Positions 10,626-46,231 of a stretch of DNA of 64,000 bases are shown piece after piece. The notes under the pieces are model-generated. The model was given only the letters and a program-made list of their open reading frames with translations, made no database searches and had not been told where the DNA came from. The stretch's first letter is position 1, and every line of letters begins with the position of its first letter. The position numbers and the translations under genes were made by a program. The stretch spans positions 14,136,001 to 14,200,000 of the forward strand of contig NC_135253.1 in assembly GCF_964204865.1 (NCBI RefSeq). The letters run 5' to 3'. The stretch is from Styela clava (Eukaryota).

Positions 10626-10880
10626 ATATGGCCTATAAGAAGACCTCACCTTAAAAATTTAATGAACTCATGCAACCTGTTTATGCAATATTTAAAATAT
10701 AATTATACTTGCGGTGTGCAATCTTAAATGACATGTTTTTCCTAACCTGATATTTCTTTATAGCGTGCAATGTTGTTCTATTCAACCATCAACTATTAAC
10801 CCGTATAATTCGTTAATCATACTGTACTTGTCTTAGTTGTCCATCATTTTCATAATTATCCCAATGATATATCATAATTA

Positions 10881-10904
10881 TCTCTCTCTCTCTCTCTCTC
10901 TCTC
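10881..10904. repeat. (TC)n microsatellite
   Basis: (TC)12 run. Confidence 0.95.
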
Positions 10905-12870: not shown

Positions 12871-13982
12871 TCGTGGGGCGGTTATCATGCTGCCGTATTG
12901 ATATTACACACCACCAAATATATTATTAGTCATTCAAACCGCAATTTTTTCATATCTGTAAATTTCTAAAATAGGTGATAGCATGGATACAGTTTTCGAG
13001 TAACTCTCCAAGCACTCATCTATCTATTCATTGCCGTCGATATATAGCGTCATTTCTTTAATCATAGTAAGTCACCGTCTTTGTGAGATACGCCGAATAA
13101 TCGAAATTTTGAGCCGATTTTATAAATTCAACAGGTAATATGAATTTGGGCCGACTAATGTGCCGTAACTTTTGATTAACGTTTAGAATCGATACATTAA
13201 AAACCACAATGAGAGCACGACAACTGTTTATTATGTGTCAAAATTTGAATATTTTATTCTAGATTATATTGCAGAAATTATTATATTTGGCGTTAATAGA
13301 AAAACGAGATTTTTTCGACACATAATAGAAGGTCGAACACTTTGCATTCGATCGTGCGATAGAAATTTACATAGCCTCGGGGTCGGTGTTTGTATCAGGC
13401 AGAATATTTCTCGTTTCATACGATTTCAAGTACAAGGGTGATTGTATAAGGCATAGAAATTGAGGCTTGAGGCTACATAGACATGGCAAAAGTAGTTCTG
13501 TGTTTCGTTTTTCCGTCAGTAAATGACGCCTATAGTTGAAATTTTATTTTTTTGGGGAAATTTTAGTTGTCGAACATACGAATTTTGTAGCGAAATTTGT
13601 TGAAAATATTAGTCTACTATATATAATATATATTTGACTTTTTTAGGATTTAGTCAGGGTCGGAAGAATATAGTTTTCTGCCCCAGTTTGACTGTCAACA
13701 GCATATATATAATTATATATATATAAATAAATATGTATTCTGGGATTCTTTAGCACAGGGTTGAGTAAGTTCGGGTTATAAGCAAGTCTATCTTCTTTTA
13801 TACGTACAAAAAGAACTTAAAATTTTCCGCACTAGATTGAAATATACAATAGTCTTCAGTTGACTCAGAATTGCTATTTCACTGGCTATATATTTTTTTC
13901 TTATCGTATAATTGTACTTGACAAATTGCGCCATGTCTACACATTCCTTATAGTTTACGTAAGATCGTGAAATGAGAAAACT

Positions 13983-14095
13983 ATGTCTTCTGAAGTTGAA
14001 GAGACGCATAAAATCAAAGCATTGACGTCAGCGTTACAAGAAACAAAAGATGACTTAATTCACTGGACATTAATTCCCAACGAAGACGGAGATAC
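13983..14095 (+). CDS. IkB-like gene coding exon 1 (MSSEVEETHK...PNEDGDT)
   Basis: ATG at 13983 with in-frame TGA at 13968; ends in the ANK1 start EDGDT; donor gtgagt, phase 2. Confidence 0.85.
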
Positions 14096-17000
14096 GTGAG
14101 TTGTATTACTGTTTGATTCGTGAATATTGAAGTTTATAATGAAAGCGAAGGTTGTTGCTTGTGGCGGCATAATAGGGGTAATAACGCTTATCACGTACTT
14201 GCCAATGTTTACTAATTTATCCCATTTTTGAAAGTACAGAGTAGAATCTGTACTTTCGGTTGTTAAGATGACTGAACTTGTATTTCTAATGTCACGCCAA
14301 CTGACCACCAAAACTAAACTTTCCGACAAAATGAAATTAATAATTAACAACGAGAGCGAAATAGTACCGATCGAGAGCCGTCTTATCAATCTTGCTCACC
14401 ACTAAAATTTGAGAAAAAAAAATAGTACAAGTTTTCCAACTGTGAGGAAATTTTGCGTTGTATTTCCCATAGTAATATTAGTATTTTTTAGTCAATTATT
14501 ATTCTTATAATTCCTCTTTATGCACACATTATTACCACCTGAGAGCGACTTGTGCATAACACTATAGCTGAGGATTCATGAAAGATTAAATTAATGAGGT
14601 TACTTTTGTGCATAATGAGGGAGAAATAAATAGTTCCAGAATAGGCGAAGGGAGGAGTTTAACGACAACGGTTGGGAACCACGGACGTAATATATTTATA
14701 TATACTTGCCATTTCACATCAACGTAATTCTGAGAGAAAGTGCTTTACATGACTCTAATCAACGATGGAAAGCGAAGTCATTCACACAGAGTAGTAAAGA
14801 GACAAACGTGAATGTGAAAAATTTACTAGATGTTTTATAGGCTGAACTTGGTCGAATGTATAAAGTGAAAGAACGTAAAAGTCCAGACTTTTTACACGTA
14901 CCATACGTTTCGCGGTGTCACAAAACAACATTTTTCTGACATTCTTATATAGTTTCGAGTAGACTTTCGTGATTTCTAAAAAGTTCTGTCTTTACTTTTC
15001 ATTTCGTACATACTAGTTAATGGGAAATACTAGTTAATGTGTTTATACCAGCGATTCCCAAATTTTTCTTCGTGCAGCGCCAAATTATAGGGAAAAAACT
15101 CACGGTGTACTTTCACGAAACAAAATGCTGCTTTTAAATATATCTCAATTTTGTGATCGTATACTATATAGTATACTATATGCCTTTTGCATAGTTTGTA
15201 GACATGTAGCTCTAAGGAATAAATGCGAAAGATCAACTATTCTTCTTCATCCCTGCCTGATTTACCTTTGAAATTCTAAACAAACCACTCATATTCGCTA
15301 AACTCGGTTCAGTAGATGAATAAACAGCAGCTCGTGAAATTGTAGCAATTAGTGTATGTCTCTATATGTACGTAAAAAAAGGTAAAATAAATTTATTAAT
15401 TTATATAAACCGCATTTAAAAAAAGATACAATAAAACATTTTATAATAAATACAACATGTAAAATATTCAATCATATTTTATTTATGTTAATTATGTTTA
15501 TACAATTCTGTTAATTTTCGCGGCGCACTTGGCGCCAGTTTGGAACCGCTGGTTTATACCATTAATCAAATCTACCACCTGCCAACTGTTTGCGATGAGC
15601 TGTAGACAAATCATAGTGACCCATAGAGTGAATCTAGTTTCCCCGTTGGATATATATATATACTAATCAAATCGTAAAGCATTTGGGTTCGCATCCACTA
15701 GCAGAATCAATTTTATCAACCTTCACCCGTCGAAGATAGTTAGCTACGAGATGTATATAAAATAACTGGTTTTTCTAGTGTATTTACAATTAATAAATAT
15801 AGGAAATAAAGGTGGAATTGCACGTATATATATCTGTGTAAAGCGCCTATACACTAGCCCAAAGTGACTATAACATATAGTTATAGTCACTTTGCACTAG
15901 CCTACCTGTCTCTCGCTTTTGCGCGCAATATTTGTCGTAATTATTGGAGTGGATCTAATACAGCCATATCAGATGTCGATGTACATCACTTAGCAATGAG
16001 TTGCCAAATATCTATCTATTGAAAGTTTCATAACCGAATTGAAGTGTTCTGAGTAACAGATTTGAAGTTACAGACTGTGTCATCTCTTGCGGTTTTAAGG
16101 GAATACTGTCGAAAATCTTTTTATTTATTTTTTGTATCCCAGATCCTCGTAATAAATTGAACAAAATTGTCAAAGTGTATCATTATTGCAATGAAAATGA
16201 AGGGAAGAAAGATTTTATGATTTGAAAATTCTTACCGAAAATATTGTATTCTGCGAGAAATACGCGTCGGTCTGAAGTCTGAACTTATTTATTTGCATAC
16301 TGTTAAAAAATATCATAATGGAACTCTGAGTCAAATTGAGTGTGATTGCGTATAAGCTAAAAAGACTACGTTGAGTTCTTTCTCTTTAAATTGTTTTCAT
16401 GGCTTCCTTCGGTCTGGTCTGGTTTTATATCGCTTTGAACAAACTAATGATTTCTTAATATATGTATGAAGTATGAAGTTTTACAATTGCTTTCAATCCT
16501 TGATTGATGCGGTACTATATACGCCATCCAAATGTTGGCGCTATAACCTAATCAACGCGCCTTCTTCATTCTGTGCTTAAAGCCACCATGCGGATTGTTC
16601 GATGTTAACCGGTGAAATATATTAGCGATTCGGACTAAAGTCAAGTGAAACAAGTTACGGCATTTTAGAACGACATTTAAAAAGAATGGACGTAATTGAT
16701 AATAAAAACATCGCCGACGTAAAAAATGCATTTTACCTGTTTATTTTCTTTGCTACCCATTATTGCTTTTCTCCCAATTCCTTCCTGATATTGATGATCC
16801 ATCTCTATTTCTAGCTTGGTTCAAATTTTCATAAAAAACGTTCTACATGCCATACTCTCGTAGTAGTCAATATGCTAACTAATTTACGTTTCTATATTTT
16901 TCTAGGGCTATACATCTGGCCATTATCCGTGACGATATCAATCTTTGTATTTACCTTTGTCGTCTTCTAGCAGCCCAAGGAATTGAACTTGATATTAGAA

Positions 17001-20000
17001 ACAATTTGATGCAAGTAAGCGGTGTTTAGCATATTTGCTACTGATCTTTTATATTTCTGTTGTAGCCTTAAACAAAGTATGAATATTTTGGCGTCAACAG
17101 TTTACGTAATGGAATCCAACAAGTATCATTTCTACGGCAATAATCGGGCTGAATTCTCGATTCATTCAAATTTGTCTTCAAAGAAATAAGTTGTTGATAT
17201 TTATTGCGATAAAATATAGCCGATAAGACCCATGTAAGTACCCATAAGTGTACGCATATAGGAAACAGGGTTATTCACCAGGATTCTATTCCTGGTCAGG
17301 CATGGGGATAGCTTGTCATTGAATCATTCCAAATGCAATATGCTTGGTTTTGAGTATAAATGTTTAAATACTATTTCGGTATTCAATAATCATCTTAGCC
17401 CACCCTAACTTAACGTACGACGTTGAGATTTCACCCGTGGTAGGATTCAAGTGGTCGACCCCTTATTGGAATGTCGTGGTCGTCAGGGAACCCGTTCTAA
17501 ACCCATGAGTCACATTCATTTTCTGAAACGAGGAAAGAGAACCCGTTCGTGAAATTTTTGAATCTCACCACTGGATTTTACACGGAATATACTATACGTT
17601 ACGGAGAACATGCTGTAGTTATTACCGGCATGTATTTATTGACTTATGCCTAACCTTTGGGCCTAACTTTGACAGTATTGATGTTTATAAGGTACATTCT
17701 CGACCACTTATTACATGTTATGGATGTGGCCTCTCATTTCTCTGGCCCTACGATATCGACTAACGAGACGTCACTATATTTGTATGGAAAATTTTAAAAT
17801 TATGTGACATAATTAAAAAAAATAATCCCAACGTTGAGATCTAATATAATAATGAACAGAAAAATGATGAAATCAGTGCGGTTAGTATTTTATAATTTTT
17901 TGCTGAACACAGTTTTCACCGAAACGCTACGCTAACATTTCCTGATATTTTCTCCATATTTGAATAGGAGTCGAAACTTTCGTATCGATATCTCAAATGA
18001 CGATACCCATAACCACAGTATTTTGTTAATATAATGGAAATACAATGCCATACGGGTTCATGACACGTAAACGAAAATTGTACTAGCATTGCTCAATTTT
18101 TGTTACCGCCAATGGAGATGGAATAGCATATTCATGGACGACAATTCGGGCCCAGTAAAAAGTACACGATTAGGCTCACGTAACATAATGAATGCTTTCA
18201 AAATATGAGCGGAAAAATATTACAATGCATTACAACGCATGCATTTTGAATGGTATGGAACTCGGATATTTTTTTATAGTTATGTTCTTGAGACTGTTAT
18301 GACCTTGCTTGCTTGTGATTTACGTTTTAATCTTCAGTATTGTCCAGCAGCTCGCTATATCGACCAACAAGAACTAAACTCGCATAGTAATAGAGATCGT
18401 AACACGCCGTTTTAATCCTTATAGTCAAAAAAGATTTATGTATGGTACTTGTTCGTAACGAACGATGTTACTACAGGATGTAATTTTAATTTCTTCAACG
18501 AAGGAATTTCTTTATCAGCGCTTTCTGCTTTATGTCGTAATACGAGGAAAGTAAAATAGATACTATCGCACGTAATTATCACGCAGGTATAGCTTTTTGC
18601 TGACAAGGCTTATACGCCGCCCTTAAGAAACAAGTGAGTTTTTTGATGTACATATGGTCGGGAATTATTTTGGTATTAATTCATGTAGTGATAAAGCATT
18701 TCTTGTTAATATTATTAAATTTAGGATAATCGTTAATTTTCGCTTTCTCGGTTTAATAATGCTTGTTTATAATTCAATGAAAAATTTAGGAAATAAATTG
18801 TTATGAAATATACTAAAAAAAATGCTAAATTTAGTTCCATTTTCCATATACGTTTCGCAATAGAGATAATAGAACACAGCCATTAAAAATAACTCGTGTT
18901 GAGGTTATAGCACGCTACATCAGCTTCGTAATACGACTAAAATTAATTAGAAATGTTCGAATACCAAACAGTTTAACAGTTTCTATCCTGACCAACGTGG
19001 CGAAAATGTTACTTTTATTTATTTTTATGTATCCAATCATAAGTTGCAGAGTTTTGTTCTGCTTAGAAAGTGGTATATATATATATATATATCTTACAAA
19101 AACACAAACTCTACTTATGTTATATATATATATATATTTAATAAAAATGGTAGGACCCAACTTGGTTAGGTTTAGAGCAATCTTGTTTATAAAACATCCA
19201 GTAGGTCCACCTTTCGGACCACGCTTCACATTATGCCACTGTAGCAATGGGAAAGACCCTACGCTGCATCGCAGAAAAACAGCGACTAGACGTTACGTTA
19301 ACATGAGGTTATTTTAATATCGTTTTTCTTGGCACATGTGACGAATCATAGTTCTGTAGAGCAGGGGTCCGCAAACGACGACCCGCGGGCCAGATCCTGC
19401 CCGCGGAACAATATAATTCGGCCCGTGAAGCTCCAATGAATTATATTAACAAAACAACTGTATTGACGATTATATTCTTCACGTAACAGAATTTGTTTTG
19501 AGATACTAAATTATATTATAACCTAACGAGTGTATAATTCACAATCACTCGTTTAATGAGCCTATAAATTGATTATAATTAAACAAATGGCAACAGATCG
19601 TATAAAAGTTGATGCTGAGTGCAAATGGTTTAGTGGCGCAGAAAATATTCGAATGATCAGTCTTCGCGCGCTGCTTGAAATGTAACTAAAATCTGTGTGA
19701 AAAAATGTGATTCATTGGCCATTCCCTCGGTTTTCAACTTTCTAAAAATATGTGCGGCCCGCCAATGACTTGCAACCTTTAATTTTGGCCCGCGAATGAC
19801 AAAAGTTTGCCGACTCCCGACGTAGAGAATAGTAAAATCATATTTTTGACACTGTTTGGTAAATAAATACATGTTTATCATCTTCCATTATGAAAGTAGT
19901 TTTAAATAAAAATTAAAAAAAGAACATAACCTATTGTCGGTGTATAATGCACAATTTTTTCCCAAACCCAAGTATGGTCATTTAGCAATAAGGCTTGTTA

Positions 20001-23000
20001 CTAGGCTAAAACTGCTTGATAATATAACTCTAGCCTAGAGCATGAATATTTTAAAAAAAATACAAATAATGATTCACATCCGAAAATTTCGAAAGTGATT
20101 ACGCCCCCTCGTCCAATGTCACTGTCAGTAAAGCCTACTTTTTCTTTATTATTCATTTCCATCTAGACAGAGTTTGTGTAAATTCACGTCAATATTTTTC
20201 AAAATTTAATGCTCTGAATCTGAAACGAGGAACAATAATTTTTTCCTTCTTAATAATTCCGTGCTCAATGATAAGAAACAGAGCCGTACCTATCGGCTTA
20301 CTGATATTCAACAATTCTTGACCTGGCACTGACATTTCTCACTCAGATTCTTTAAAAATACCATAATGATTATAATCCCTACAAGTATCGCAATCGAGAA
20401 ATGCGATTCCATATTGTGATTACAAACTGGCTCTGTTTTTTATTCTATCCGCTCTCTAAGGTACGGTATATACTTACAGGCAATGCAAGGATTGGTACGA
20501 AATCAAAACCATGTGACTGCAAATGGAAACGGTTTACAAACGCTGTTAGTAAATCGTTAAATCGTGTTCATGATAATCTCGCTTGTATTTTGAATTATTG
20601 GTGATCGTCCACCACTCTTGAGACGTTCAGTCAATTGTACGGTGCTGAATTGCATAAATATTAAGTGATATGGAATGACATGAAGGAAAAATTATGCCAC
20701 AATGCCCAATTATTTCAAGCCATGGCGCCAGAGATATTTTCAATTCATTTAAACATTTAATATTCTAAATATAAGTTCAAATTTATTTTCAATAGTCTAG
20801 TCCATGACACTTTCACCCGATCTATTTTTGTACTTGGGTTTTCCAATACATACTAGACATCATCAATCAAATTGTATTTGTATGTCACTATATCAATGAC
20901 CAAAACGTAAATGTATTGTCTTTCCCAATGAAACCAAAACTACTAAAATTCAAGTCTTTGAGTCATGCATTTCCCAGAAAAAAAAGTACAAAAACAAATT
21001 GTAGTCTATGACATTTTGAATTATTGTACATTGAGCAATATTAAAGTTTGCACGTAAAATTGTAATGTAAAACAAGGCAGTCGCCCTCTACTGAAGTCAT
21101 TCAATTGGTGATTGGTACCATATAAATAACCATTCCTACACCTGGCAATTGTAGAAAATGTTGTTCACAGAGATACGACGAAGAAAACTTGACGTATAAT
21201 ACGCAATAAACGTGACGTATTATATGACTTGGATTTTCTTTTTATACGGCCGCATATAAGTACATTCTAATAATTGCCAAAGAATTACAAACATGGTTTA
21301 ACATATCATTAACATACAGACATGGCAAACAGACGCACACAACTCGTTTCGAAATAATAAGCGATCCTTTGTAACCAATAGATTTATGCTGACAATAACC
21401 AATGCAAAACAACAACAAATAACATAATTTTGTTGATTTTATATGGTGTAATAAATTTTGTTATGTTCATATTCTTTTTTGTTGGCCGAAGCAGACATAA
21501 ACAATTGAGAAGTGTCACGAATTAAATATTTTACCGTGTCCCGTTCATAGCAAATGGTTTAGTTAAAAAAAAGGAACGAAACTCGACGACGTTATCGGCG
21601 AGACTCGTCAGGATTCGAAACTTTGTAACATCCTTAATTTGTTTGGGGAAAAGATTCTCCCAAGCGATAGCTCAATTGCTATTGAACTCGAACTTGTACG
21701 TATCTCAAAATAAGGAAACGTAATGAAGAACATAATTGTAAGCACTTTTTACACAAAATATACTGAGACACTATAAAAAGTTAACGAGAGGAATAACGCA
21801 ATATATTTGTAAAACTGTTTTTGTTCAGCTATTTATTGCTGGCAAATGCTAATTGATATACTGTTATCAGTGGTTTTAAAACATCATTATACATGAAATA
21901 AACGATTTCAGTAATACACGTTTGTGATTTACAACACAACTTTACTCCGGTCTTTCAATCAAAACATAGCTCAAATACATCAACAACACAAACAGCCGAC
22001 AAAAATAACTGAAAATATTTACAAAATGGTTCAAAACAAGTGTTGTAACCAGAACTCGACTTTGGTCGTAAATACATAAATTTACAACTAACGCGTAAGC
22101 GTAAAATCATGTTATAGCACTGTAAATAATATTTACAAAGGGGTAGAACATATGGAGCAAATAATTAGGAACGACCTATTATTGCGCAAATCATTTATAA
22201 AAAAGTAAAATACATTATTGTTTAACAGACACCGCTTCACCTGGCTTGCATAACTGGCCATTCTAAATTAGTCGAAAATTTATTGGAATCGAAAGCGGTA
22301 AAAGTTGAATGGGGAGATCGTTATGGAAACACCAGTATACACCTTGCCGTAAAGCATGATGATCCGTCCTGCGACATCATGCGGTTAATTTTGAGTCATC
22401 TATTCAATGATGATGACGACGTTATAAATGCAAAGAATATAAAAGGTGAGTAACCATTATTAACTATTATTTTGGAAGTGACTATATTATCCTTATGTTA
22501 ATTTCGAGGGAAACTTGTAATATTAGCTTTGTGTCAATTGCATTCAGTATGACGCGTGATTCGGCGCGATAATTCTTCATAGTCTCAGTAGCTCTTGGCG
22601 CTTCAGTGGTTGTCCATATCTTCGTTCAGTGCTTCAGCGACTGCTCATATACCTGCACAAAGCATACAGTCAAATTTTAGAAATTCCGTAAATATTAGGC
22701 GGCCGTTTTTACATTTTCATTTGCAGTCGTTATCTTTGATTTTTTGAAATATGAAGCGGAATAGTAAGCTACCGCTGGGAACTTTTGAAAATTGCAAGTT
22801 TCGTTCTAATGCGACATAATGTTGTAACTCTAGTTGCGATGGGGCTTCAATAAGTTCAGCGTTGGCCCAATTATGAATTAGCAATTCTTGAAAGGGAAAT
22901 TCCTCCTGTAACTTTTGAATATTACTCAATATTTGCCTCCAAAAATAAATCCTATAGTGTCATTTGCATATATTGTTGATTGAATATTTTATGTTGGGTG

Positions 23001-32000: not shown

Positions 32001-35000
32001 CGTTTTTCCAGCTTGGGGCAGATTCAAATAAGTTAACTTATTTTCGTGATTCTCCGTCACAACTTGCATCAAGCTCAGACAGGAGACATTTATTGAGACT
32101 TATTTCAAGATACGACTCATCTCATCCTGCCTCACCTCCCGCTTTGGGAAGGCGTAACTCTCGTAGAGTAGGTGACGTTATGATCAAAAACACTCATGAA
32201 CAAAATAACTTCATCATCAACGAATCTGAGAGAAAAAGTTCAAATAGTCAGGTATTATTGCAATTTATTTACTCTCTAGTTGTTGGAAAAAAGTAAAATT
32301 TTAGTTTTTGTAAAATTAGTTACAACCTTAATATTTAAACCGAAAAAAATAGCCAAAAAATCTGTTTAATTCTACAGTGAACCACGGCCTCGTCAGGTTC
32401 GTCCTTTCCATCTTATGCTTAAAATGCACGGACGCGGATGACAGCGAATCTATCACATCTTATGTTTAAAATACATGGGCGCGGATGACAGCAAATGAAG
32501 TAATTAGCAAAAATTTACGTGAACTACCATCAGGCTTGGGGAATGACAATTCGCTCTCAAAAGTAGTCATACCTTCGAGGTTCGAATGCAGAGTTCGCCC
32601 TCTGACTTTCGGTGTTGCAGTGGCTATCGCTTACCCTAATAAATCCCGCAATTGAACCGGGAATCGCTTCATTACGCTTGTTCAAATTTAAATAAATGAA
32701 TGTTCCTTGTCCGGGCTTGAAGCTGATCCGTAAGAAATTGATATATACGCAAACTTCTAACTTGAAATGCGGAGATATAATTGAGCGTGTCCCATGTTAA
32801 TGACGTCGTTGGCGTTTAAAGCTGCATTTTGCACACGGGACTGGGTGCAAAATAGTCATGGTTTGAGATAATTTGCCTTATTTCCGTTGTGCCTGCAGAA
32901 AAATGAAATACTCTGAAAGATAGTGATGGGCCTGCTATATCAGCACATTCACAGACGCTATGTTGTGGTGTTTGAATCCGATAAAAATAACAGTCGACAC
33001 CTACGTTCTTATTGTTAATGCAAACACAAGAAAATGACAGTTTATACAGCAAAGTGTTGCAATGCGAAACCGCCTCCTAAACAATACAAACAGAAACGAA
33101 ACCAATGACAAACAACAATTCAGGGGCGGTTTTGGGTATATTTTCAGAATGGCATTTTTGAGTCAGTGTTTTCGTTTGTTGATTTTGCTAATTTTGAGTT
33201 AGATCGTAGATTACTTTAACTGTATAAGATGCAATTGGTATGCTACAAAATAAATGAAGCTCTATGCAAAAATCTAATAAAGCAATGCTTTTCAAATACA
33301 GTGAAGAACAAGATACATTCGACGAAAATATTAATGCGAGTGAAATATTAGAAAATAATTGGGTGAATTTATAGAGTATACAATTTTCTTACATGTGAAA
33401 AACATAAGACCCTAACACCTAATATAAGCCATTATGTTCATCAAGATATGAATATCACGATTGTCACACGAAATTATTTAAATTACGCATATTCAAGTAC
33501 TTACTATACTTGTTATTTGTCTTGTTAGAATTCACTACTTTGGTTAGGCGCAAAAATAATCCGTAGATAATCTGTAACAAAAGTTTGATGCGGCGATTGA
33601 GCTATGTGTGGTTTTGTAAAGGCCTGAATTTAAGACATGAAAGTGCATTATCATGGTAATGGTCGGGATATTCCGTTCGCGTGCGACGCAGAACAAACGT
33701 GAGGGAAACGAAGAAACGTTAAAGTACGTCGATATGACGCACTGCCAAGTTGGTACGCAAGTACTAAATGTCACGCAAGCCTCTCTTAAAACATTAATAT
33801 ATATTTATATAACTAGGTATAAGATCGTCTATAAATAATATAGCCGATAATAATTTGTTTATGCAAATATTTTTGCTATAATTTCATTACAATTTGGCTC
33901 GTTTGAAAAACTCAATTAGAAACACATTAAGCTGAAGGTAATCAAATTACAATATCTTATTGAATATTGAATGACACTAATATTCTATTCACTTTGACCA
34001 CTGTTTATGAATGAAATGGAAAATTATAAATCCACTTTGATAGTTTTTAAACAGATTACATTAGAAAATGTTACCGCCATGACCAAATTCTGATTTCATT
34101 TGAAATTATATTTGACAAAAATTAATATTCGTATTTTTATTTGTCAGGAAGCCATAAAAAATAAAATTGATATTATTTCGCACTGTGCCCCAATTTGACT
34201 ATTACGAAAAATTGGACAAATAAGTTTATTTTTACAGTATTATTCCCACATCAAGAAAAAATTGAGTAAAAGGCGTCAATGAACCGTCTCAAATCAGATT
34301 TAATGTGCTTTTGATTAGGAAATTGATTTGTGTTGTGCGTGCCATGTGAAACCGAAAATAACTATGAAACTGCGACTCTGTTGGTATGTCGGGAGTCGAT
34401 CGGGTCAAGGCGATATAATTTCCTATTACTATATCTTTTTAATTTATTCTTACTTATTCAAATTTCAATTATTGCGACATAAATGGATTTAGTATAGGGC
34501 GTTTATTATTTAAACAATCCAATCATGAATGTTTTCCCGTTTTTACAAGATCAAGCGTGGGCCATTGATGGAGCTCGCTATTCTATGGATCATACTCAAT
34601 GAACAGTCATCTAAAACCTTTTTTACGATATGTATCAAACAAATGTTATTGTACCGTATAGTTACATTTTATTGGACGAGACATCTGTTAGGATTGCAAG
34701 AACTTTTACAGTCTTTAGTTTGTTGTAACACAGCAGTAGAATTAGTTAGTTCGATGTGAAACGTATTTTCCTGGCGTTTGAAACTGGATTAGAGTCATAA
34801 GGTTGGCTAGATACACTACTCACGATATTTTGTTATCATCAACAGTGGCACTGAAATAAAAAGATGTAGAGACACAAAAATATGTTATGTTCTTATTATT
34901 TCTCATTCAAAAAGTGTCGCACAACCAGTCATAGATAATGCGAATCGTTATTGAATGATTCTATTTAGAACTCCGTTTGGTAAATGACAGCAGCTTAGAT

Positions 35001-38000
35001 TCAAATCCTATTGTTTTATTGGAAGATATTTTGAAATATGAATATGAAACAATTGACCTATTGAATGCGTAAGGTGAAAAGTCCTAATTGCTTCCATTTG
35101 AATACAAATTCAAAAAAATGTAAATTTATTAGATTGTTTTGCTATAGAACGTGAATGAATATTTGATTATTGCAGGGGATTTTCTGATGTCCAAATGGTT
35201 TAACGGCTTTAGTTAATATAAAAACAACGGAATAATACATTTGAATGAGTGAGTTATTCACTATGGCATCAAAATTTCAATCAGTGAGCAAGGGGAAAGA
35301 ATACTCAGTACCAAATCGCCGTTTACTTCGTCTAATGCGTGGAGAATTAGTGTGCTGCCATTATGGTTTTCTTTTTCTATACATGTGTCCGCAATATTTA
35401 TCATTGTGCGCGACTCACTCGAGTTTGTTCATTGCGATAGTTTAATACGGTAATACATTACGCAACTTGATGAGATCACGATAAGGTCACAAAATTTCAC
35501 ACGGATTTTGGTGATTGTGTAAATATGACGAGTTTCCGCCCTTTTTACCGCTGTTTCGTTTGCACGAAAAACCTCGCGAACGAACAGTGTAACTGAGGTC
35601 GAGTAATAATAGAATCTATGTTTCAGGAACACTCGTAAACCTTCAACCCCCGGTAAATGTCCATACGGTGTATTATTCAATTTCTGGCAACTCATAAGTC
35701 GAAGTTGAAAATTCTACTACGCTTTCATTTAAAAAACAAAAGCTTTGTCGATCGCAAATGATTACATCACCGATGAATGAATTTCACTTATGTTTCCCAC
35801 CTCATCTATAGTTAACGTTTAACATTTATAGGTCAATTTCATATCACGCCACAATTCTTCGCACTTGAATAGCATGATTTCTCAGCATATAAATGGAACT
35901 TTCGCGTTGATGACGGAAGACTACATAATTGCGGTAACATGCTATCATTATATTGATAAGGTTTTGAACACCGAGAAGTTAGTTTCGGTTTACTAAGCAT
36001 TTACAGGTTTTTCGTGCGCAAAGCATTACTGGGTGTATAGAAAGATAAATGTTTTGAGAACTGAACGATTTCGTCATTTCTGAGTTAATCACGATTCTTA
36101 TAATAAATTAGTTAAATAGAGTTTTGCTTCGAAAATGAACTAAAAACGTAACGCCAATCTTAATTGGATACCTGTGCGACGGTTGCTTACCGAGAAAATG
36201 GAGGATATCATGTATGGCCCACATTTAAAAAATAAACGAATTATGGAAATCGAAACCAATAAAAGGTAATTACAAGGAAACAGGAGTAAATTTACTCCTT
36301 TTATGAGAAACTTGTGTGACATAAAATCTGTAATTGATTCTTCAAATATATAATTCAAATGAATTGAAACTCCCATAACATTCTTCACCGTGTTTCATTA
36401 CAGACATTCACAGAACCGAAACTGCGTTCTCAGTGCGATTGTAACATAATTTTGGTACATAATGGACACGCTATATATACATTCTCCACAGTGAAATGTC
36501 AGCCAAAGTTCTGAAATACCCTGTCTGTGGTTATATAGCTATTTGGCAATACTATGAATTCTATTTATTCTCTAGTGAAAGGTCAAATTTTTGTCTCTGA
36601 TATTAGTTTTGGTCCATGCGGATAAATCAGTATATCAGGCATCCACTTCTTTCTCTGCTTTTACCAATTTTACGATATTTTACTGACGTTTCAACGATTT
36701 CGTCAGTGAATTATAGTCAGAACATTTTTTATATGCTATATTCATTGACGGGAAACGATTTTTAATTTGTGTTATGGATAGGGTGGTTTTTGAAGGAAAT
36801 AAACGTGAAAGCAATGTAAATGTAAGATTCCAAACCGGATCAAATACATTTGCTACCATGTATTGTTGTCATTTTAAGAAAGTCAATTTATTACCCAACA
36901 TATTATTACCTACCACCTATTGTCTCTTGTCTTTTGTCATATATATTTTATGGAACATTTGGCGGACGTATTTAATTGTGTCATAAAATATCGCCCCTGA
37001 AATAAACATCCATTTGATCATTTTCCAAAGTTTCTGCCTCTATGAATAATATAAATTTGTCATTTTGTTCAAGTACGTGACAGAAGTACGTCACACAGAC
37101 TCAGATAGTAACTGAAAAATTCTGATATATTTGCATTCATTAATTTGGCCTTTTGTTTAGTAATTCAAACTGTTTATGTTTTGATAAATACGAAAGCATT
37201 GTATGAAAATATTTCTCTGTATAAATGACTGACACGCGGTTTGTGGGAATTTTTATACCGTTGGTGTTCCGGATTGAATCTTGATTTTCAAAAGATACGA
37301 GTCAAAATTGCTCTCGCGATATAAGTTCGGAATCCTCGCCGGTGGATTTTTTCTCTGGAAGTAGTATTAGAACATGATATTGATGTTGTGTTTATCATAT
37401 TATATGACTATTTCATGCCGTGTAACCAAATTTCTCACTTTTAAAAAGTCCGATCACTTACGTATATCACTCGGTAATATTCTTATCTGACGTTCACCGT
37501 TTACATATAGATTAACCCCGCTTTTTTGTTTCGTCGCTGTCTAGCAGCCGAAAATTTTCTTGTCAAACAAGTAAGAATGAGTCACAGAGCTGCATTTATG
37601 TAATGCAGACGTGATTATTGGGAAATTTCTAGTTAATTATACTTTCATTCGGACTCGGATAAAGATTTCATCCTGTCGCCTAATTGTAGAAATTTATATT
37701 TCAGCTGTTTCAAGACCAATCTCAAATGTCATCGGTCACAAACGAGTCAAAATCTGAATCTCCACGCCGCAATGTCATAGTCAAAAATTCCCTAAACAGC
37801 GAGTGCGCAACAGCATCTCTTTCACAAAATATCAGAAGCATAAACACGGAAAATCCAAAAACAATAAAACGAGAACCGGGCTGTACTTCCCCTTCGTCAT
37901 ACCCTATTTCTATCGAACCGGTCTTGTCGACAGAAACAGAGACTAGCAAGTTCAATAGCAAGGCGTTAAGGTCCATAGAGCAAATGCAGTCGCAACTGGA

Positions 38001-41000
38001 TAGGCTCCACCGAGCTCGAGAACAACATGCCCGACTTGTTGCCGGTGACCCGTTGACTCGTATACCTGCCTCAATTGCTGCGTCGTTACTCAGACAGCGA
38101 CCACAAGAGCCATTCGTATCCCTATATCCACCTGGGGCTTTGGTAAGATCAAATGAAGGTGACAAGTTTAAATGTGCGGAAACGACTGAAAGGGACAATG
38201 AAGGCGAGATCAGTCAAAAGACAAAAGAAAAGACTCCGAAAAAGAAAAGCGTGACGTCGTCCAGAGGCATGCGGTCACTAAAGACGTCTTTTCTAACTTC
38301 AATAACGCCAGCCACAAACTCAGTTTCGAAACGTAAGACAGGCGCGTCAAAATCAGTCAGTGAACCTCTGGATCTCAGCCATCCCGATCGTGAAGTCACA
38401 ACAACAACAGTATTGCATTTGGTGAGTCAGCACCCGCATTCCTAGCGTTTTTTCTTGTTCGCTCTCGTTTAAAGAAAAAATATCACAAATCACCGTAGGG
38501 TAATATTACAAGCAACAAATTAATAAGCGCGTTATTGTGATATTGAAGGCGAGAGCGAAACGAGCGTTATTGTGGAAGAGAAATCGGTTTCATTCACGGT
38601 ACCAGACGTTTATTTATAGTGGCCTATGTACTACACACGCACGCAATCGCTGGTGGTTTGAATATCATAGCAAAGAGAGAAAATGATCGATACCTCGATA
38701 TCTTTTTTCATCGTTGCTTCATACGTTCATTACGCGAGATAGGCCTTGGTAGCACACACAGTACGGGAATAGTATGCGAAGAGATAGTCGCAGATTATAT
38801 GGTACAAAATCGCATTCATTCGACTAGAAATTACTTTGGTGTAGGGTTACTGAAGGTTTCAAAATGTTGATGCAAACTATTTGTTGTAATATGGTGAGGA
38901 TAGGCTGCTTCCATCATAACAATTCAGGTAACGGCGATGTCAGCAAACTTATCCGTGAAATCAAGTTCGATTGTTTACCAAGTTGTGCGGCAGCATACTT
39001 CACGAGACAAGTGCTTTTACTGCTAAAATTTTGTTCCAAGATGGCGTAATTTTGAAATATGTGAATGCTGATATTTCGTTATATTGAAGTGCAAAATACC
39101 ACTGTCATGCTGTGTAACTTTGCCTTTTTATACTAATACTGACTAATAATCTGTCAGTTTCGTCACTCATATGTGTGTAGTATACTGGTTCGCAACACGG
39201 TATATATATTGTTGGTGATTCTGTTTAATTATCAATCTCCGTCGTTGATCTTGGAAGAAAAGGTTTCAATTTCATTTTATTTTGCTTATTTTTGAGTTTA
39301 ATTTTATATTTCTCAGGACGATAATAATACAAACATGCTTTTGGAGGATAAAATGAACACTGAAGTGGACAATGACAAAGCTAAGACCAAGGAGTATGTA
39401 GCTGAACAAGCGGATTTACACAGCAAAATTAAAAAAGAAGTTGTATCGGACGATCCTGACAGCGTAACACAGGGAAACACCAGCCCGCCAACCATGCATT
39501 ATCCGACACTGATTACGCAAGCTGAATACCCCACTTTTCCAAAGTATACTAGTCAGAACTTGAGAGAATCATTTGTACCTTTTGTGAATCCGTGGCTTAA
39601 TTTCCAGGGAGCAATTATTAACCCAAACGCGTTTCTGACTCAAGCAGCATACGGTTATATACCAACAGCGTTAGGAAACAGTGCAGCAGCACAGTTACAG
39701 CCAACGCTTCCGCCATTTGACCCTAACGGAATTTCTCAAAGAAACCACTTTGCAGCTGGGATATCACAGTGGGTAAATTTATCACTCGATGTTGCTCGTG
39801 CAGCAGAAAGGTTACGGCAACCTCGAATTGACGAAGAATCTGCCGATAGCATGAATTCCCGAAAGCGAAAAGCAACAGACGACATAGAAAATCATAGATC
39901 ACCAGCGAAAGAAAGTGAATCGGATAATTTATCGTTTTCACGCCAGTCGGCGGAGAATGGCAAGAGATTTCGTTCACATAATTCCACTGCAGTACACTCG
40001 GAAGGACTACACAGGTCTGCCAGTGATGACCCAGGAAATTCAAGAGAGAAAGACGAACAATTATCTTCAAACAGAACGCTGAAACGACGAAACAGTGCAC
40101 CGTCGACTGGAGTAGCCCCGCAAGTTTTGGAGGTGAGTGCGTCTCTTAAATTTTGACAGCCAAATTGGAATTATTCTCTTTTAAAACGTGGATTATGCCT
40201 AAGTCTTAGCAAAATTTATATAAATGAATTTTTAAACTTCTTTCTATTCGCGAAAATCCATTCCATACTCAATTCCATTCCATTCCAAATATTTCTCCAT
40301 TAAAATATCCTGAAAGAAATGTAGTGGTTAGGTGTTCTAATAGCGTTTGGTTTTTGAAACGAATGACGTACGTAGTGCAAGTCAATCAGCGTTAATACCC
40401 GATACAAACATTAAAAAGTGTTTCATTGACATTTCGAGAAATTGCGTGACTAGGCATGCATAATGTTGTCGACGCATCATAAACGTGATTTCGAGTCGTG
40501 TTGGAATATGAATCCTGGCTGGACTGTCCTTAACTATTTTTGTCGTCAATTTATATTTCATAGATCTGAGACTATTATTGATTTTAAAGGGTTAATACGG
40601 CTAAAGTTCATTGAAGGACTGAAAGAAGTTTGTGCCACCAATTATCATGCTGTATCTATTACAAGAAATGTAATAAGTTGTATATGACCTGATGCTAGCT
40701 GTGCCCAAAATATATACTTACCGTGTCCGTTCGGATCACGATATATTAGGAAGAGTTTCTATGGTGTGAAAGAATTAGAATAATTCTACTATTAGATGCG
40801 TGGAAGCTTGATTATTGCAGTAGGTATTAAAAAGTCTGGTTCGCGACCTGACTATCTGTGCCATACCAACTATATATACTAGATTCTCATATCTGTCTGT
40901 AGTGTGTAGCTACTATTTATAAACAAAATTTACATTTTAGAAAGAAGATGACAGAAGAGTTGCTCCCGTCGATTTGCATTCCTACGCTGGATGCCTGCCT

Positions 41001-44000
41001 CCGCACTGCTTACACCTATTACAATCATCCGGAAATTTGGCATTGTCTTACAGGGAGCATGCTTTGAAAGAAGTGGAGGAAGTTTATCAAACAAGAAATC
41101 ACGGTGTACCAATCACGGCTAATGGAAATACGTCTCCTCAAAGTGAGTTGAGAATTCAACATCACACCAACAATGCAAGCAATGGCGATACTAAAACCAT
41201 CGAATTGACACGTATTCGCGAATCTGATTTTCACATGGCCGGGAGAAGGCCCAGTTCCACGCTTTACAGGGAACTGTGGAGACCGAGCGGCAGAGACGAA
41301 GGCTCCGATTCCGCAAAAAACAAAACAATCCCGTTGCATCCAAAAGCAACTTACTTGCATGGCAGTCACAAACCAGAATCTTGGAGTTCTTACAGAAGAA
41401 AATTGCAAAATTCTTCTGTGCTATCCTATAATGAGAGAAGGCGAAGTGGCGATAAAGCAAGAAGGGCGTCTGAGACAGAAAGCGACGATGAGGATTATAT
41501 TCAAACGCTACAAATTAGCGATGCATCTTCTGACGATGAAGAATATAGCGAGACGATAGCTAATCCCTGTAGTGACGCAAGGTCGCAAGGATCAATCAAT
41601 TTCGGGAGAGGTGCTTGGAGTGACCTCGATCTAGGGAACCTTCCCGCTTTTGGGGGAAACGTCGCAGTTCCAATATTAAACACTGTACCTCGACAACATT
41701 CCACATCAATGTATGCAACTATTCCAACTAAAATGGCATGTAGCGTTATCAAAAACGTCCCCAAAACACTAAATGGTTTACCTCGAACTTATACCTCTAC
41801 AAAACTAGGAAATCCTACAAAGAAGTCTGTTGATCATAAGGCATACGCCTATGAATTTTCACCCCATGACGTCATTAGAGAACCGAGAAAGGAACTTCAA
41901 TTAAACGACTTACCTCTCACTCAACGATCAACTACACGAGAAACGAAAAGTCACAAATGCCGAGGGTGCTCCCACAAGAGAGCGTCACAAGACGAAAGCA
42001 GGCTAAAATTAATAGGCAATATCTTGCAACAGTCTTACAGCAAAACGACATACGGAGGGTAAGCATTATATTTTGTACTTATTTAGTGGTTTACATTAAG
42101 TATGTACGCGATTCACTCCTTGCTGTGACGGTAGACATAAAGAGAGAGATATCCCCATTCATCAGGAATAATATTAATAATAATTTGAACTTGTTTTTGG
42201 CCGATGCCAAAGAATGCGCTGTGGATATATCTACTCGCCATCACAGGTTTTTAGTTGAAGAATATTGCTTGCGTTGGCGGGTTACTACGCGGATACGCCA
42301 GCGCGATCCTCTGCTATTCACTGGTTTCTGTATTTGTTTATTTTCTATCATTCTGTTATTAGTTGATATCGTACGATGTTTATTATTTTTGGTTTTTATG
42401 GTTTCATTATCCGAGATTATGCAAGATTTTACTTTACTAAAAAAAATTAGGAAAATATTTGGGAATCGTTTTCCATTTTTGATATTAGTTTGCCATAAAG
42501 TTACCTCTCTTTTGACATCTCAATGTACAACATATTGATATGATATGCTTTATAAATGCTCCATAAATAAGTACTGTATAGGTTTGTTCCAACAGTTACA
42601 GATTGAGATATATTGATATATACCCTCGCTGACTCATATTGTTGCGAAACCTATGACTAACTCTATCAAAACTTAACGCTTACCAAGCTAAATGGGCTTA
42701 GTCAACGGCTAGTTTTACTTGTTCTCATATTGAATATGGAAATTTCTCTGTCAGTGATTTGAAAACTACGAAGCATATTTTTTTAAGTTTCCGATGTTTA
42801 GATCTAAATATATCGTTTTTCCTTTGTTCGCCCGAGTAATACACATCCAACTTTTCGATTTTCAATATAATTTTGAATGTAGCCAATTACTTTACCATGA
42901 AATAGATCAAAGATTTCTTTATTCCTTTGGTTATATAGCGTTCTATATCTGATATTTGTGTCGTAAAAAACCCTTGGAGTCATCTTCCGTTTTCTTATTG
43001 TGAATCAGGTCCTTCCGGGAAATTTCCTTATTGAAATATTTTCGCTTACGTTTTTTGTTTAATTTTAACTTCTATTTAATATGAGATTATTAAAGTGAAC
43101 AAAAACGAGCGATGACAACAAGCACAAATGCGTGCAAGCGTGACGTTAAGATCTTTTTGTTGTTATTTTTGTTTTGACCGCTCGGTTCCGCTTTCGTCAT
43201 ATTGTGCTTGTGTGGTCACGAGCATTTTCATTCACAATTTTCGATCAGTATGGTCATTCACGATTATGGTTATGCTTTTACCAAAAGAGGTCTTTGCTAT
43301 AAAATGAAAAAAATATTCAAATTAACAAAATATCACGAAGTAAATGAAAAGCGAACTTTCATTATCGCGGCGTTTATAGCGTAAGATGTAAAATAATGCC
43401 ATTTCCTCGTAATATTCCTTTTTTTACATTAGTATAGGCCTTCTAAACGTGAATAACACTGTCACAGATGACGTGATCAAATTTTTTGCGTCATTTTTCA
43501 CATCACCTAAAAACAGGAATTGGAATTCACGCACATCTGAAGACCCAGACTCATTTAATAATAAATATTCTTGTCTGTGAACTTTTCACTTTCGTAAGGT
43601 TATTGCATACGTTTAAATATATTTTTATCTGTTTGATTGATGCCGCAAATTCTAGAATGTAGTCGGAATTTGAATACAAATGGTACTTGATAAATCAATC
43701 GATCCGTTTTACGTCCATTGTCAAAAATATTTGTACATATTACATGAATTTTTGTGTATTTAATATTACTTCGAACTCTCATACATATATTTCACATTGT
43801 ACATCACATTGTATGTAATTAGGAATTTAATAATAAACATTTAGTAAGTAATAGTGATACATGGTCCCAATTGCCATTCGATTGCCTTATCCCTGCAAGG
43901 AAAACCGAGTTTCATTTTAGTGGCAGCTACGCAGGAATTCAATAATTACTAATTAAATTATATTCTATTAACAAACCTTCAACTTACACCACACCTCAAG

Positions 44001-46231
44001 TGTTCGCCCTAGGAAGTTTATATATGAATACTAGTAGTATTCTGACCATCTTTTAAAATTAATTTCGTTTTCGAATATATTCTGAAAAAATCTATTGTAC
44101 AGAATAATCTGTGAATGAGTCAAATCACGATTTCATTATGACAAGTGAAATATTTTACAACAACAACACCAATTTCGATTACTGAATATGTTTCATTTTT
44201 AGTTTCGAATTTAGCTAAAATCAATTTTTTTGGCTATCAAAACCTATTCATCATACAATTTTGCTCAAATTCCAGTTCATTCAACATTATATAGTAGCAA
44301 GAACCATCTGCCCTTAGAACGAAATTTTCATACTGCAGTTGCGTTACTTCGAAATTTTCGCAATGACAACACTTTCATGCGCACGCGGATATTTCGGTTC
44401 CGCGAACGAGTTTCATCGAAACCCTTTTTCTTCACGACATTGTTACTGAATATACAATACAACTATACAGCACATTGATCTATTCTATTTCTCATAGGTT
44501 TCAGAGTACAACTCCACATTGTGCGCCGAGGTTGGTGTTTACTTCAGAGATAAAGCTTCCAAGCGAGGTGCAGCATCGAAAGGTATTCTCAAACTCAGAA
44601 GAGAAACCAGCTAAATCGTCAGGACTGACTGCTAGTGCCGCCATTGAAGAGAGGTCACTCCAAAGAACGACAACGACCAGTAGAAATTCAGATTCGGAAT
44701 ACTCGCACAAGTTATTCAAATTTGCTAGAGCGGTGAAAGAAAATAAGAATCGAGAGCCAAAAAGTGTCGGAGAGAAGGATAGCATAAAATCAAGTTCAGC
44801 GACTGAAAACAGAGCATCGATTTTATCTGGTTCTAGTGTATTAGCGGCTAGAACAGGACGTAGCACCTCATCGTCTTCCACGAGACTTAATTCTTTGGAC
44901 GCCAAATTGGAAGAGCTTCGACAAAAAGCTACTGAAAGAGAAGAGATGAATAAACTAGACAGACAAGAAAGAGAGGCCGCGCATTCTGAAGCAAAACCAG
45001 TAAACATTAAAACTGAAACTACGTACTCGCATTCTAGCACAGACGTAACATCGCCTTCATGTTCACAAACGAACGTGATATTCGACGCAAAACGTAAATT
45101 GAGTCAAAGTCCGTTTCAAGAATCGGAAAGTGGGCGTTTTAGTGGCAAAAAGAATGTGGCTGTGATCAAGCCAAATCAATCGATTGTCTCACAAACTAGT
45201 CGTGATAATATCCCTTTCAACGTCGGTCCACCGAAAAAGAGGCATATGAAGAGATATTCACCGGAGTTTTATAAACAAAGACGAGAAGTTATTTTGCAAG
45301 ATAGAGAAGTGCGAAGTGCATCCCCCCTGCCACAAGAACCATTTGTTTCAACCAATGTTCTTATCGACAATGAAGATCGTTCTTTGAACGTTAGATGGTG
45401 CTCTCCCGATCGAAGTCCAACTCGAAGAAAGCATGCACAAAATGCAAGGACTATCCTAACATATACTGTACCGTTGGGACCTCTCAAGCAATCCCGTGGA
45501 TCAAACAGTCACACTGTGCGACTGGAGGTTGGTAACTACGATTATTATTAATATGTAAACTCATTTTTTCGAAATCTAGTTCGCTTTATTTTTCCATATG
45601 AAGTTATACAGGTTGTTCCATAATATCAACATACATATTGAAAAATTTCACTATGTCATAAATGTGTATATTAGGAAGATACTTCATGGACATCCTATAG
45701 ATTTCCTCTATTATGTCCATGTCCTTAGGTAAAAATCTCTGTATTTTTTGTTTGATACAGAAATAGATAAAACAATATGACTATAGATATACATTGATTT
45801 GTTCAGTTTCCTTTGGACGTAGAGCAACAGTTTTATAAAACTTAAAATGATTAGAAATAGCGTTTTCCTTTCTGGTAGAAATTGGTATTTACACACGGGA
45901 TGTGGTTATGTGTAACCACCTAATAATTTCGTAATTCATTAAAAAGGTTTCATATGAAAATTTCTATGTCATTACAAAACAGAAATAGATAAATTTGTAT
46001 TTTCGGTTACAGCAGTGTTGTTGTCAATGGATACATTATTGTTAAAACCAACTAATTTAAAATAAATTGAAATTTTGACAGCAAAATTATCGAAAACATC
46101 CACGTTATGCTTCGTCACCTCGCTCGGATACGGTTATTGTGGTCGAATCCAGAGTGCAAGAAACCCTCAGAGATGAAATAGACGAAAGACTGGAGATTGG
46201 AGACCTGGAAATCAGCGATGATGAAAGTTAA
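13983..46231 (+). CDS. IkB/BCL3-like ankyrin-repeat protein with very long low-complexity C-terminal extension (~1558 aa, 11 coding exons)
   Basis: Exons 13983-14095, 16906-17014, 22229-22445, 26087-26175, 31650-31727, 32012-32251, 37705-38421, 39317-40132, 40941-42058, 44498-45527, 46082-46231. All introns are GT-AG with matching phases (2,0,1,0,0,0,0,0,2,0); total 4677 nt. Exons 1-6 are secure; the join to exons 7-11 is inferred from phase compatibility. Confidence 0.75.
15860..15894. mobile_element. 35-bp TIR-only hairpin with perfect 8-bp TSD (probable P-element excision footprint or minimal element)
   Basis: caaagtgactataac-atata-gttatagtcactttg, flanked by cactagcc at 15852-15859 and 15895-15902. 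Confidence 0.85.
16906..17014 (+). CDS. IkB-like gene exon 2 (ANK1: AIHLAIIRDD...ELDIRNNLMQ)
   Basis: Acceptor tttttctag, donor gtaagc; resembles BCL3 'ELDIYNNLRQ'. Confidence 0.92.
19362..19819. mobile_element. hAT-Charlie-type MITE in intron 2
   Basis: TIRs caggggtccgcaaac / gtttgccgactcccg; ggcccg subterminal repeats; TSD ctgtagag / acgtagag (6 of 8 match). Confidence 0.8.
22229..22445 (+). CDS. IkB-like gene exon 3 (ANK2-3: TPLHLACITG...DRYGNTSIHLAV...INAKNIK)
   Basis: Acceptor tttaacag, donor gtgagt; two ankyrin TPLH-type motifs. Confidence 0.95.
22894..22903 (+). promoter_or_regulatory. Candidate NF-kB site GGGAAATTCC (intron 3)
   Basis: Exact match to GGGRNWYYCC; function untested. 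Confidence 0.4.
26087..26175 (+). CDS. IkB-like gene exon 4 (ANK4: GYSALHIA...HGAEIDQP)
   Basis: Within ORF 25963..26193; acceptor acacag, donor gtgagt. Confidence 0.93.
27555..27564 (-). promoter_or_regulatory. Candidate NF-kB site GGGATTTTCC (intron 4)
   Basis: Exact consensus match on the - strand; near-site cggaatttcg at 27541. Confidence 0.4.
31650..31727 (+). CDS. IkB-like gene exon 5 (ANK5: DTKSGKSPLYIAVQEKNVEATQVLLE)
   Basis: Long polypyrimidine acceptor, donor gtaatt; resembles BCL3 'DIKSGRSPL'. Confidence 0.92.
32012..32251 (+). CDS. IkB-like gene exon 6 (degenerate ANK6 LGADSNKLTYFRDSPSQLA plus linker)
   Basis: Acceptor tttttccag; resembles IkBalpha 'GADVNRVTYQGYSPYQL'; donor cag|gtatta, phase 0 (read-through stops at 32296). 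Confidence 0.85.
32409..32497. repeat. Diverged 47-bp tandem duplication
   Basis: catcttatgcttaaaatgcacggacgcggatgacagcgaat / catcttatgtttaaaatacatgggcgcggatgacagcaaat. Confidence 0.85.
33665..33674 (+). promoter_or_regulatory. Candidate NF-kB site GGGATATTCC (intron 6)
   Basis: Exact consensus match. Confidence 0.35.
37705..38421 (+). CDS. Tail exon 7 (Ser/Thr-rich; IKREP, PQEPFVS, PLDLS)
   Basis: Acceptor atatttcag in frame with ORF 37726..38445; donor gtgagt, phase 0. Confidence 0.85.
39317..40132 (+). CDS. Tail exon 8 (IKKEV, RKRK)
   Basis: Acceptor tttctcag in frame with ORF 39335..40156; donor gtgagt, phase 0. Confidence 0.87.
40941..42058 (+). CDS. Tail exon 9 (RRxS sites, acidic Ser clusters)
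   Basis: Acceptor cattttag in frame with ORF 40974..42062; donor gtaagc, phase 2. Confidence 0.87.
43017..43027 (+). promoter_or_regulatory. Candidate NF-kB site GGGAAATTTCC (intron 9)
   Basis: Contains the palindromic RelA-type GGAAATTTCC. Confidence 0.35.
44498..45527 (+). CDS. Tail exon 10 (coiled-coil-like stretch, IKTET, PPKKRH, second PQEPFVS)
   Basis: Acceptor ttctcatag, phase 2, matches exon 9; ORF 44475..45551; donor gttggt, phase 0 (an alternative gtaact donor lies 4 nt downstream). Confidence 0.85.
46082..46231 (+). CDS. Terminal exon 11 (QNYRKHPRY...LEISDDES*)
   Basis: Acceptor ttttgacag; 49 open codons then TAA; AATAAA follows near 46286 and 47063. Confidence 0.75.
   Translation, partial: QNYRKHPRYASSPRSDTVIVVESRVQETLRDEIDERLEIGDLEISDDES

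Follow-up and report, generated by a model that had tools for sequence, protein, structure and literature searches.

We report on a locus of the tunicate Styela clava at positions 13983-46231 of a forward-strand window of 64,000 nucleotides (nt) (window C4:14136001-14200000; locus C4:14149983-14182231), in which eleven exons encode two kinds of sequence: an ankyrin module that is supported as an IkB-family domain of the BCL3 kind, and downstream of it a tail that is real coding sequence without known domain or homologue. The reading we favor, with a probability of about 0.5, is that the locus is one gene, whose product would carry a degron-less IkB-family head on a lineage-specific disordered tail and would act as a BCL3-like nuclear modulator. 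A single protein of 1,558 residues is allowed by the DNA, making such a giant architecture possible. All positions given below without a sequence name are counted from the first letter of the window.

The exons were rederived by hand from the DNA and database searches were run for each exon separately, while length, composition and motif counts were taken on the assembled 1,558-residue model. All ten introns are of the GT-AG type, the phases are compatible throughout, and the summed coding length of 4,677 nt corresponds to 1,558 codons plus a stop. A first-pass annotation, made from the letters of this stretch before the present work, had proposed an in-frame eleven-exon model of ~1558 residues, and the exon-by-exon rederivation reproduces that model in its phases and its length. 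The exons, together with one alternative end, are as follows (slashes mark splice junctions).

13983-14095, + strand: exon 1, with the ATG, 34 N-terminal residues and the onset of ANK1 ('EDGDT'); ends in phase 2 at the donor TAC/gtgagt
16906-17014, + strand: exon 2, remainder of ANK1 through 'NNLMQ'
22229-22445, + strand: exon 3, ANK2 and ANK3, including a long loop; phase 1 at its end
26087-26175, + strand: exon 4, ANK4; splice sites checked
31650-31727, + strand: exon 5, first half of ANK5
32012-32251, + strand: exon 6, which completes ANK5 and continues with a degenerate ANK6 (18-residue insert) and ~30 Ser/Arg-rich residues; ends in phase 0 at the donor CAG/gtatta
32252-32296, + strand: read-through of exon 6, 14 codons then TAA, the alternative end of a 296-residue IkB-like protein
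37705-38421, + strand: exon 7, 239 codons, phase 0-0, within an open frame of 251 codons; acceptor tttcag/
39317-40132, + strand: exon 8, 272 codons in phase 0-0, with an RKRK cluster at ~39860
40941-42058, + strand: exon 9, 372 codons and 2 nt, with acidic clusters of Ser, Asp and Glu
44498-45527, + strand: exon 10, 1 nt plus 343 codons; a predicted helical 'LDAKLEELRQK...' stretch
46082-46231, + strand: exon 11, 49 final codons, with a hydrophobic 'VIVVE' run before an acidic end, and the TAA stop

The open frames of exons 7-10 end no more than a few codons away from the splice signals proposed for them, and that of exon 9 begins at the acceptor and meets its stop inside the donor. In a window of 35% GC, where stop trinucleotides make up 5.9%, an open frame of 373 codons is expected by chance only 2e-5 times, and exons 7-11 are therefore not chance frames. 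An AATAAA signal follows at 46286, 55 nt beyond the stop of exon 11. Exon 7 and exon 8 each run from phase 0 to phase 0, so that skipping of either would keep the frame.

Our criterion for the IkB family was a block of 5-8 tandem ankyrin repeats (PMC3553144), and exons 1-6 encode a block of this size. Pfam Ank is detected in exon 3 (6.2e-10, with Ank_2 at 8e-9), in exon 4 (4.3e-5) and weakly in exon 5 (5.6e-3), and the full set of six repeats, beginning with ANK1 ('DGDT...') at residue 35 and ending with a degenerate sixth, was laid out by alignment to a seven-repeat paralogue in the same genome. The six repeats that had been placed in exons 1-6 at first reading are upheld by the Pfam matches of exons 3-5 and by the paralogue alignment. 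Exon 2 searched alone against solved structures has BCL3 (1K1A) as its sole match, at an E value of 0.6, and a profile combining exon 2 with the corresponding paralogue exon, searched against the PDB (177,635 distinct chain sequences), aligns to BCL3 residues 13-47 at an E value of 7.8e-5, in register with repeat 1; BCL3 is the only significant match of this ANK1 profile. Exon 3 and its own profile find generic ankyrins and designed ankyrin repeat proteins (DARPins) in the PDB, the structure matches of exons 3-5 being altogether of the generic ankyrin kind, and exon 6, which is present in a single copy in the genome, has no match in the PDB. The module therefore probably belongs to the IkB family, as the earlier IkB/BCL3-like assignment had it, judging by the in-register match of the ANK1 profile to BCL3 and by the intron positions common to it and the paralogue.

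The flanks of the module depart from both of the familiar layouts. An acidic PEST region after the last repeat, which is a mark of classical IkBs, is absent from exon 6; that exon has 13 Lys and Arg against 8 Asp and Glu, and its post-repeat stretch is basic and rich in Ser and Arg. The layout of the BCL3 subfamily, with seven repeats and short Pro/Ser-rich transactivating flanks, is likewise not found, the module having six repeats and an N-terminal flank of 34 residues.

The paralogue lies on another sequence of the assembly:

C1:6541214-6544128, minus strand: BCL3-like paralogue, compact (~3 kb), with seven repeats

Its exon at C1:6543688-6543795 is 42% identical to exon 2 over all 36 residues and is the only such exon in the genome, and its counterpart of exon 3 is 35% identical, with coinciding boundaries. 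Four intron positions are the same in the two genes, phases included, namely those after 'EDGDT', 'NNLxQ', the 'G' that ends ANK3, and 'LLE'. The paralogue lacks the intron between exons 4 and 5, so that the two equivalents are contiguous, and both genes reach 'LLE' in phase 0. Of the junction between ANK6 and ANK7 only a remnant, 'KNTH', is present in exon 6. The N-terminus of the paralogue is ~58 residues long and has no DSG motif, and no tail-like exons were seen near or downstream of it. The C1 paralogue fits BCL3 better than the C4 gene does. Just upstream of the paralogue, and in its orientation, a 455-codon open frame by eye resembles an ELM2-SANT protein of the MIER type.

Two further sets of ankyrin exons came up in the same genome. 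A third, weaker IkB-like locus lies at C1:101703-104067 (+ strand), where a two-repeat exon ending in 'NATTYDG' matches the exon 3 profile at an E value of 3.6e-6; another repeat exon lies 2 kb downstream, and a DSG-type motif is absent within 10 kb on that strand. The other set, at C16:11.73-11.99 Mb, is a one-strand tandem cluster of eight or more loci whose ankyrin exons are nearly identical; these are generic matches of the exon 3 profile. A single IkB is reported for Ciona (PMC7347617), whereas the count in S. clava comes to two or more BCL3-like loci plus a third, IkB-like one.

Another mark of classical IkBs is the DSGxxS phospho-degron that they carry N-terminally for IKK and beta-TrCP. 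It had been claimed at first reading that no DSGxxS IKK degron is encoded here, barring an overlooked upstream exon that might supply one. The absence is confirmed by our scan, which found no DSGxxS-type motif either in the 1,558-residue model or on the + strand of positions 1-16900 in any of its frames, and the search of the + frames upstream of the gene found no coding exon carrying a degron. An in-frame TGA at 13968-70 stands 15 nt ahead of the start codon, and a TATATAT element stands 96 nt ahead of it. Two other features close to the start codon make the 5' end of the mRNA provisional: a good acceptor-like site, ttccttatag/, 32 nt ahead of it (13950-13983) and an out-of-frame ATG at 13973, which opens a 17-codon upstream open reading frame (ORF) overlapping the start.

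The tail encoded by exons 7-11 has 1,276 residues, of which 13% are Ser and 14.5% are Lys or Arg. No Pfam family is found in any of the five exons, and exons 8, 9 and 10 are single-copy, with no paralogues in the genome. Exon 7 has no match among 1.84e9 representative proteins, a separate search among proteins of 131-418 residues was empty as well, and no homologue of exon 9 was found among proteins of 205-651 residues. An Atlas search with exon 8 gave low recognition, with a best score of 0.80 and unrelated disordered fragments as hits. Under a codon model trained on exons 8-11, exon 7 scores +0.29 per codon. Exons 7-11 fall below the charge-hydropathy boundary for folded proteins, while exons 2-5 lie above it, and an AlphaFold2 single-sequence model of exon 8 contains isolated helices only, with a mean predicted local distance difference test score of 51 and a predicted template modelling score of 0.21. 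The tail is accordingly predicted to be intrinsically disordered; the lack of Pfam domains, the charge-hydropathy values and the exon 8 model all agree with the long disordered tail of the first-pass annotation.

Several short motifs in the tail suggest what it might do. Basic clusters occur at ~38236 (PKKK), ~39860 (RKRK) and ~45231 (PPKKRHMKR), and there are also acidic Ser clusters. A PLDLS sequence at 38365-38379 in exon 7 gives the tail the PxDLS motif that marks CtBP recruiters, in a region predicted to be disordered; by shuffling, PLDLS is expected by chance in 0.3% of cases and the looser P.DL[ST] in 5.9%. The basic clusters and PLDLS together fit a nuclear co-repressor, and PLDLS suits a BCL3-like role, repression by BCL3 being reported to go through CtBP (Keutgens 2010, cited in PMC8959985). 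The heptapeptide PQEPFVS occurs twice, at 38101-38121 in exon 7 and at 45330-45350 in exon 10, 1,029 residues apart. Since the two copies differ at four sites, all of them synonymous, and an exact 7-mer repeat arises in only 0.5% of shuffles, the peptide seems to be under selection.

Whether exons 1-11 form one gene is a question of the join between exons 6 and 7, and for this we judge the odds to be about even. On the upstream side, the 55 post-repeat codons of exon 6 score +0.29 per codon up to the donor at 32251. The 14 read-through codons beyond it score -0.24 per codon, with a coding to non-coding likelihood ratio of 0.15, and a score this low is seen in only 4.5% of held-out true coding windows. 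Because codon usage turns intron-like exactly past 32251, the donor looks real. When exon 6 is aligned by MAFFT with the corresponding paralogue exon, the two begin alike, share 'KNTH' and reach a phase-0 donor within a few residues of that block. That exon of the paralogue would not be terminal, since its seventh repeat would be cut there; with the paralogue donor at the matching place and the seventh repeat still incomplete, the intron at the exon 6 donor looks ancestral. On the downstream side, seven codons separate the first ATG of the tail, at 37726, from the exon 7 acceptor, and they score +0.36, with a likelihood ratio of 3.2 in favor of coding. The interval between the two sides (32297-37704) is single-copy in the genome and contains no convincing rival exon, its best open segment scoring 6.5 against a null maximum of 5.6, and the region downstream of the paralogue has no similarity to this interval or to the tail. 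The best segment, at 37285-37374, is a Ser-rich stretch of 30 open codons in the frame of exon 7; it was tried as an extra exon and rejected as marginal in score and out of phase.

A number of observations weigh against the join. No known IkB has a comparable tail (PMC3553144). Exon 6 and the paralogue exon give no significant alignment by BLASTP and only a weak one by MAFFT, the exon 6 donor gtatta is among the weakest of the model, and the codon statistics at the junction rest on just 14 and 7 codons. The ATG at 37726 is in frame and stands only 21 nt (7 codons) past the exon 7 acceptor, with no other ATG between them; in a tail where Met is scarce (12 of 1,276 residues) this proximity has a chance probability of 7%, and such a layout is what one would expect of an mRNA with its own start or of one that is trans-spliced, as is common in tunicates. 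In addition, the parent collection of the representative proteins contains S. clava RefSeq proteins, among them the window's own cytochrome P450 (XP_039248907.1), yet exon 7 is unmatched among those representatives; the eleven-exon model, or at least exon 7, is thus probably absent from the RefSeq annotation, which suggests little transcript support.

These points carry over to the strongest of the alternatives, which is clearly less probable than a single gene and which we regard as doubtful: that the locus contains two genes on the same strand. The first would be a degron-less IkB/BCL3-like gene of exons 1-6, encoding ~296 residues and ending either at the stop codon 32294-32296 or in a short terminal exon that escaped detection. 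The second would consist of the orphan exons 7-11 read from the ATG at 37726, with the acceptor at 37705 taking a spliced leader or a non-coding exon, and would produce a disordered nuclear protein of 1,269 residues. A division of this kind would give the upstream product the usual size of an IkB (PMC3553144) and would agree with the lack of public annotation of a fused model, but the read-through codons that might end the first protein look non-coding, and at the corresponding point the paralogue is interrupted by an intron. It could also draw on polyadenylation-like signals past exon 6, the first AATAAA/ATTAAA lying at 32638 and another at 32691; an AATAAA some 340 nt downstream is, however, the chance expectation at 35% GC. 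For the second gene, the nearness of the ATG to the acceptor is set against the pre-ATG codons of exon 7, which look coding, and against the oddity of a domainless, homologue-less protein of 1,269 residues as a stand-alone gene. If the tail had a transcript of its own, its promoter or leader could be a CpG-rich patch at 37230-37375, in which a GATATAAG motif at ~37316 stands some 385 nt ahead of exon 7. The CpG profile itself was discarded as a promoter mark, the observed/expected ratio being ~1.1 everywhere. Under the one-gene reading, a 296-residue short form ending at 32296 may be made alongside the long form.

An unlikely reading is that only the ankyrin exons are functional and that the tail exons, open by descent and outside any mRNA made as a routine, are a relic with little or no expression or belong to a very narrowly expressed gene. 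The absence of exon 7 from annotated proteins, the lack of any counterpart of exon 9 among proteins of 205-651 residues, and the empty homologue searches of both exons would suit a relic, but its five frames (1,276 codons) are intact and bounded by tight splice signals, one of them being a 373-codon frame of the improbable kind noted above, the codon usage is coding-like, the heptapeptide has been kept through four synonymous changes, and a good AATAAA lies just past the stop. Least probable of all is that the module is a generic ankyrin domain, of the ANKRD11/12 or MYPT type, which merely resembles an IkB: exons 3-5 do match ankyrins at large, with DARPins and ankyrins topping the PDB lists and exon 6 matching nothing there, but the ANK1 profile matches BCL3 alone and in register, the repeat number, the loop lengths and the landmarks 'EDGDT', 'NNLxQ/TPLH' and 'TY..D' follow the IkB pattern, those landmarks and the intron positions are common to the seven-repeat BCL3-like paralogue, and no RVxF motif precedes ANK1.

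A comparison of the predicted protein with known ankyrin proteins shows both likenesses and disparities. Classical IkBs such as IkB-alpha, Cactus and the IkB of Ciona robusta (NP_001071739.1) have six repeats, as does the module described here. The sixth repeat of IkB-alpha is of the degenerate 'TY..SP.QL' type. Unlike the S. clava C4 gene, the classical proteins possess a signal-response region before the repeats and an acidic C-terminal PEST region; in Ciona IkB, for instance, ANK1 begins at residue 128 and the phospho-serine motif is at 83-89 (PMC7347617). BCL3, an atypical IkB, is a ~47 kDa nuclear co-regulator of NF-kB dimers that recruits CtBP and has seven central repeats with flanks of ~100 residues (PMC8959985). 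The C4 protein resembles BCL3 in the in-register match of its ANK1 profile and in that neither has an IKK degron, and the richness of the BCL3 flanks in Ser and Pro can be counted as a further likeness. It differs from BCL3 in having six repeats that begin at residue 35 and, if the join is real, a tail of 1,276 residues, and the CtBP-type motif is located in this tail rather than at the N-terminus. ANKRD11 and ANKRD12 (the ANCO co-factors) combine a short N-terminal ankyrin module with a very long disordered region that recruits co-regulators of chromatin. The analogy is one of architecture only, as their repeats are not of the IkB type and no sequence similarity was seen, and they are not known to bind Rel dimers.

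The remainder of the window contains further coding sequence. An intronless cytochrome P450 gene of 492 residues (47903-49381, minus strand; Pfam p450 at 1.8e-111; RefSeq 'cytochrome P450 2J6-like') lies 1.7 kb downstream of the tail stop in a tail-to-tail arrangement. Beyond it are exons of an inward-rectifier potassium channel (52095-57650, minus strand), with IRK at 2.1e-18 in 56095-56430 and a weak IRK_C match in 52098-52472. Upstream of the locus are a reverse-transcriptase fragment spread over two adjoining frames (4520-5920, minus strand; RVT_1 at 2.4e-16) and two ORFs (8507-9442, + strand) that by eye resemble a transposase C-terminus, Pfam giving no match on 9008-9439; the other ORFs of the upstream 14 kb have no Pfam match. 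An intronless ARV1 ORF just outside the window matches 'protein ARV1-like [Styela clava]' exactly. An Rfam scan of the 10-50 kb part of the window detected no family.

Taking the locus as one gene, we can outline how such a protein may have arisen and how it might work, a scenario that we advance tentatively and hold with slightly less confidence than the one-gene reading itself. An IkB/BCL3-family protein would have gained its 1,276-residue tail by capture of downstream exons, the phase-0 donor at 32251, inherited from the ancestral gene structure of the IkB family, being spliced to exon 7. The ankyrin domain would dock on Rel-homology dimers, for which candidate partners exist, since the genome contains at least four loci with a Rel-homology domain (C6:8.98 Mb, a tandem pair at C8:16.806 and 16.832 Mb, and C9:18.303 Mb). 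The C9 domain sits inside an open frame of 1,609 codons. The tail would provide a nuclear co-regulator platform by means of its basic clusters resembling nuclear localization signals, its PLDLS CtBP motif, the PQEPFVS pair and the acidic Ser clusters, and the whole would form a constitutive nuclear scaffold tethering co-repressors to Rel dimers. Such a protein would modulate constitutively, in the manner of BCL3, instead of serving as a cytoplasmic inhibitor degraded in response to signals. From features of the DNA and of the predicted protein we thus infer the splicing of exon 6 to exon 7, the binding of Rel and of CtBP, the location in the nucleus and the insensitivity to signals.

Should the join prove not to be real, the locus would comprise a degron-less IkB/BCL3-like gene beside an orphan gene for a disordered protein, and would be relevant mainly to the NF-kB biology of tunicates. 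If the one-gene reading is true, its IkB architecture would be one that has not been described in any animal: with a real join, this would be the first IkB-family protein in which a small ankyrin domain at the N-terminus heads a disordered tail of such great length, and exon capture would have remodelled a core immune and developmental regulator among the animals most closely related to vertebrates. Such a protein would also offer a natural test of IkB domains as tethers for co-repressors of the CtBP type.

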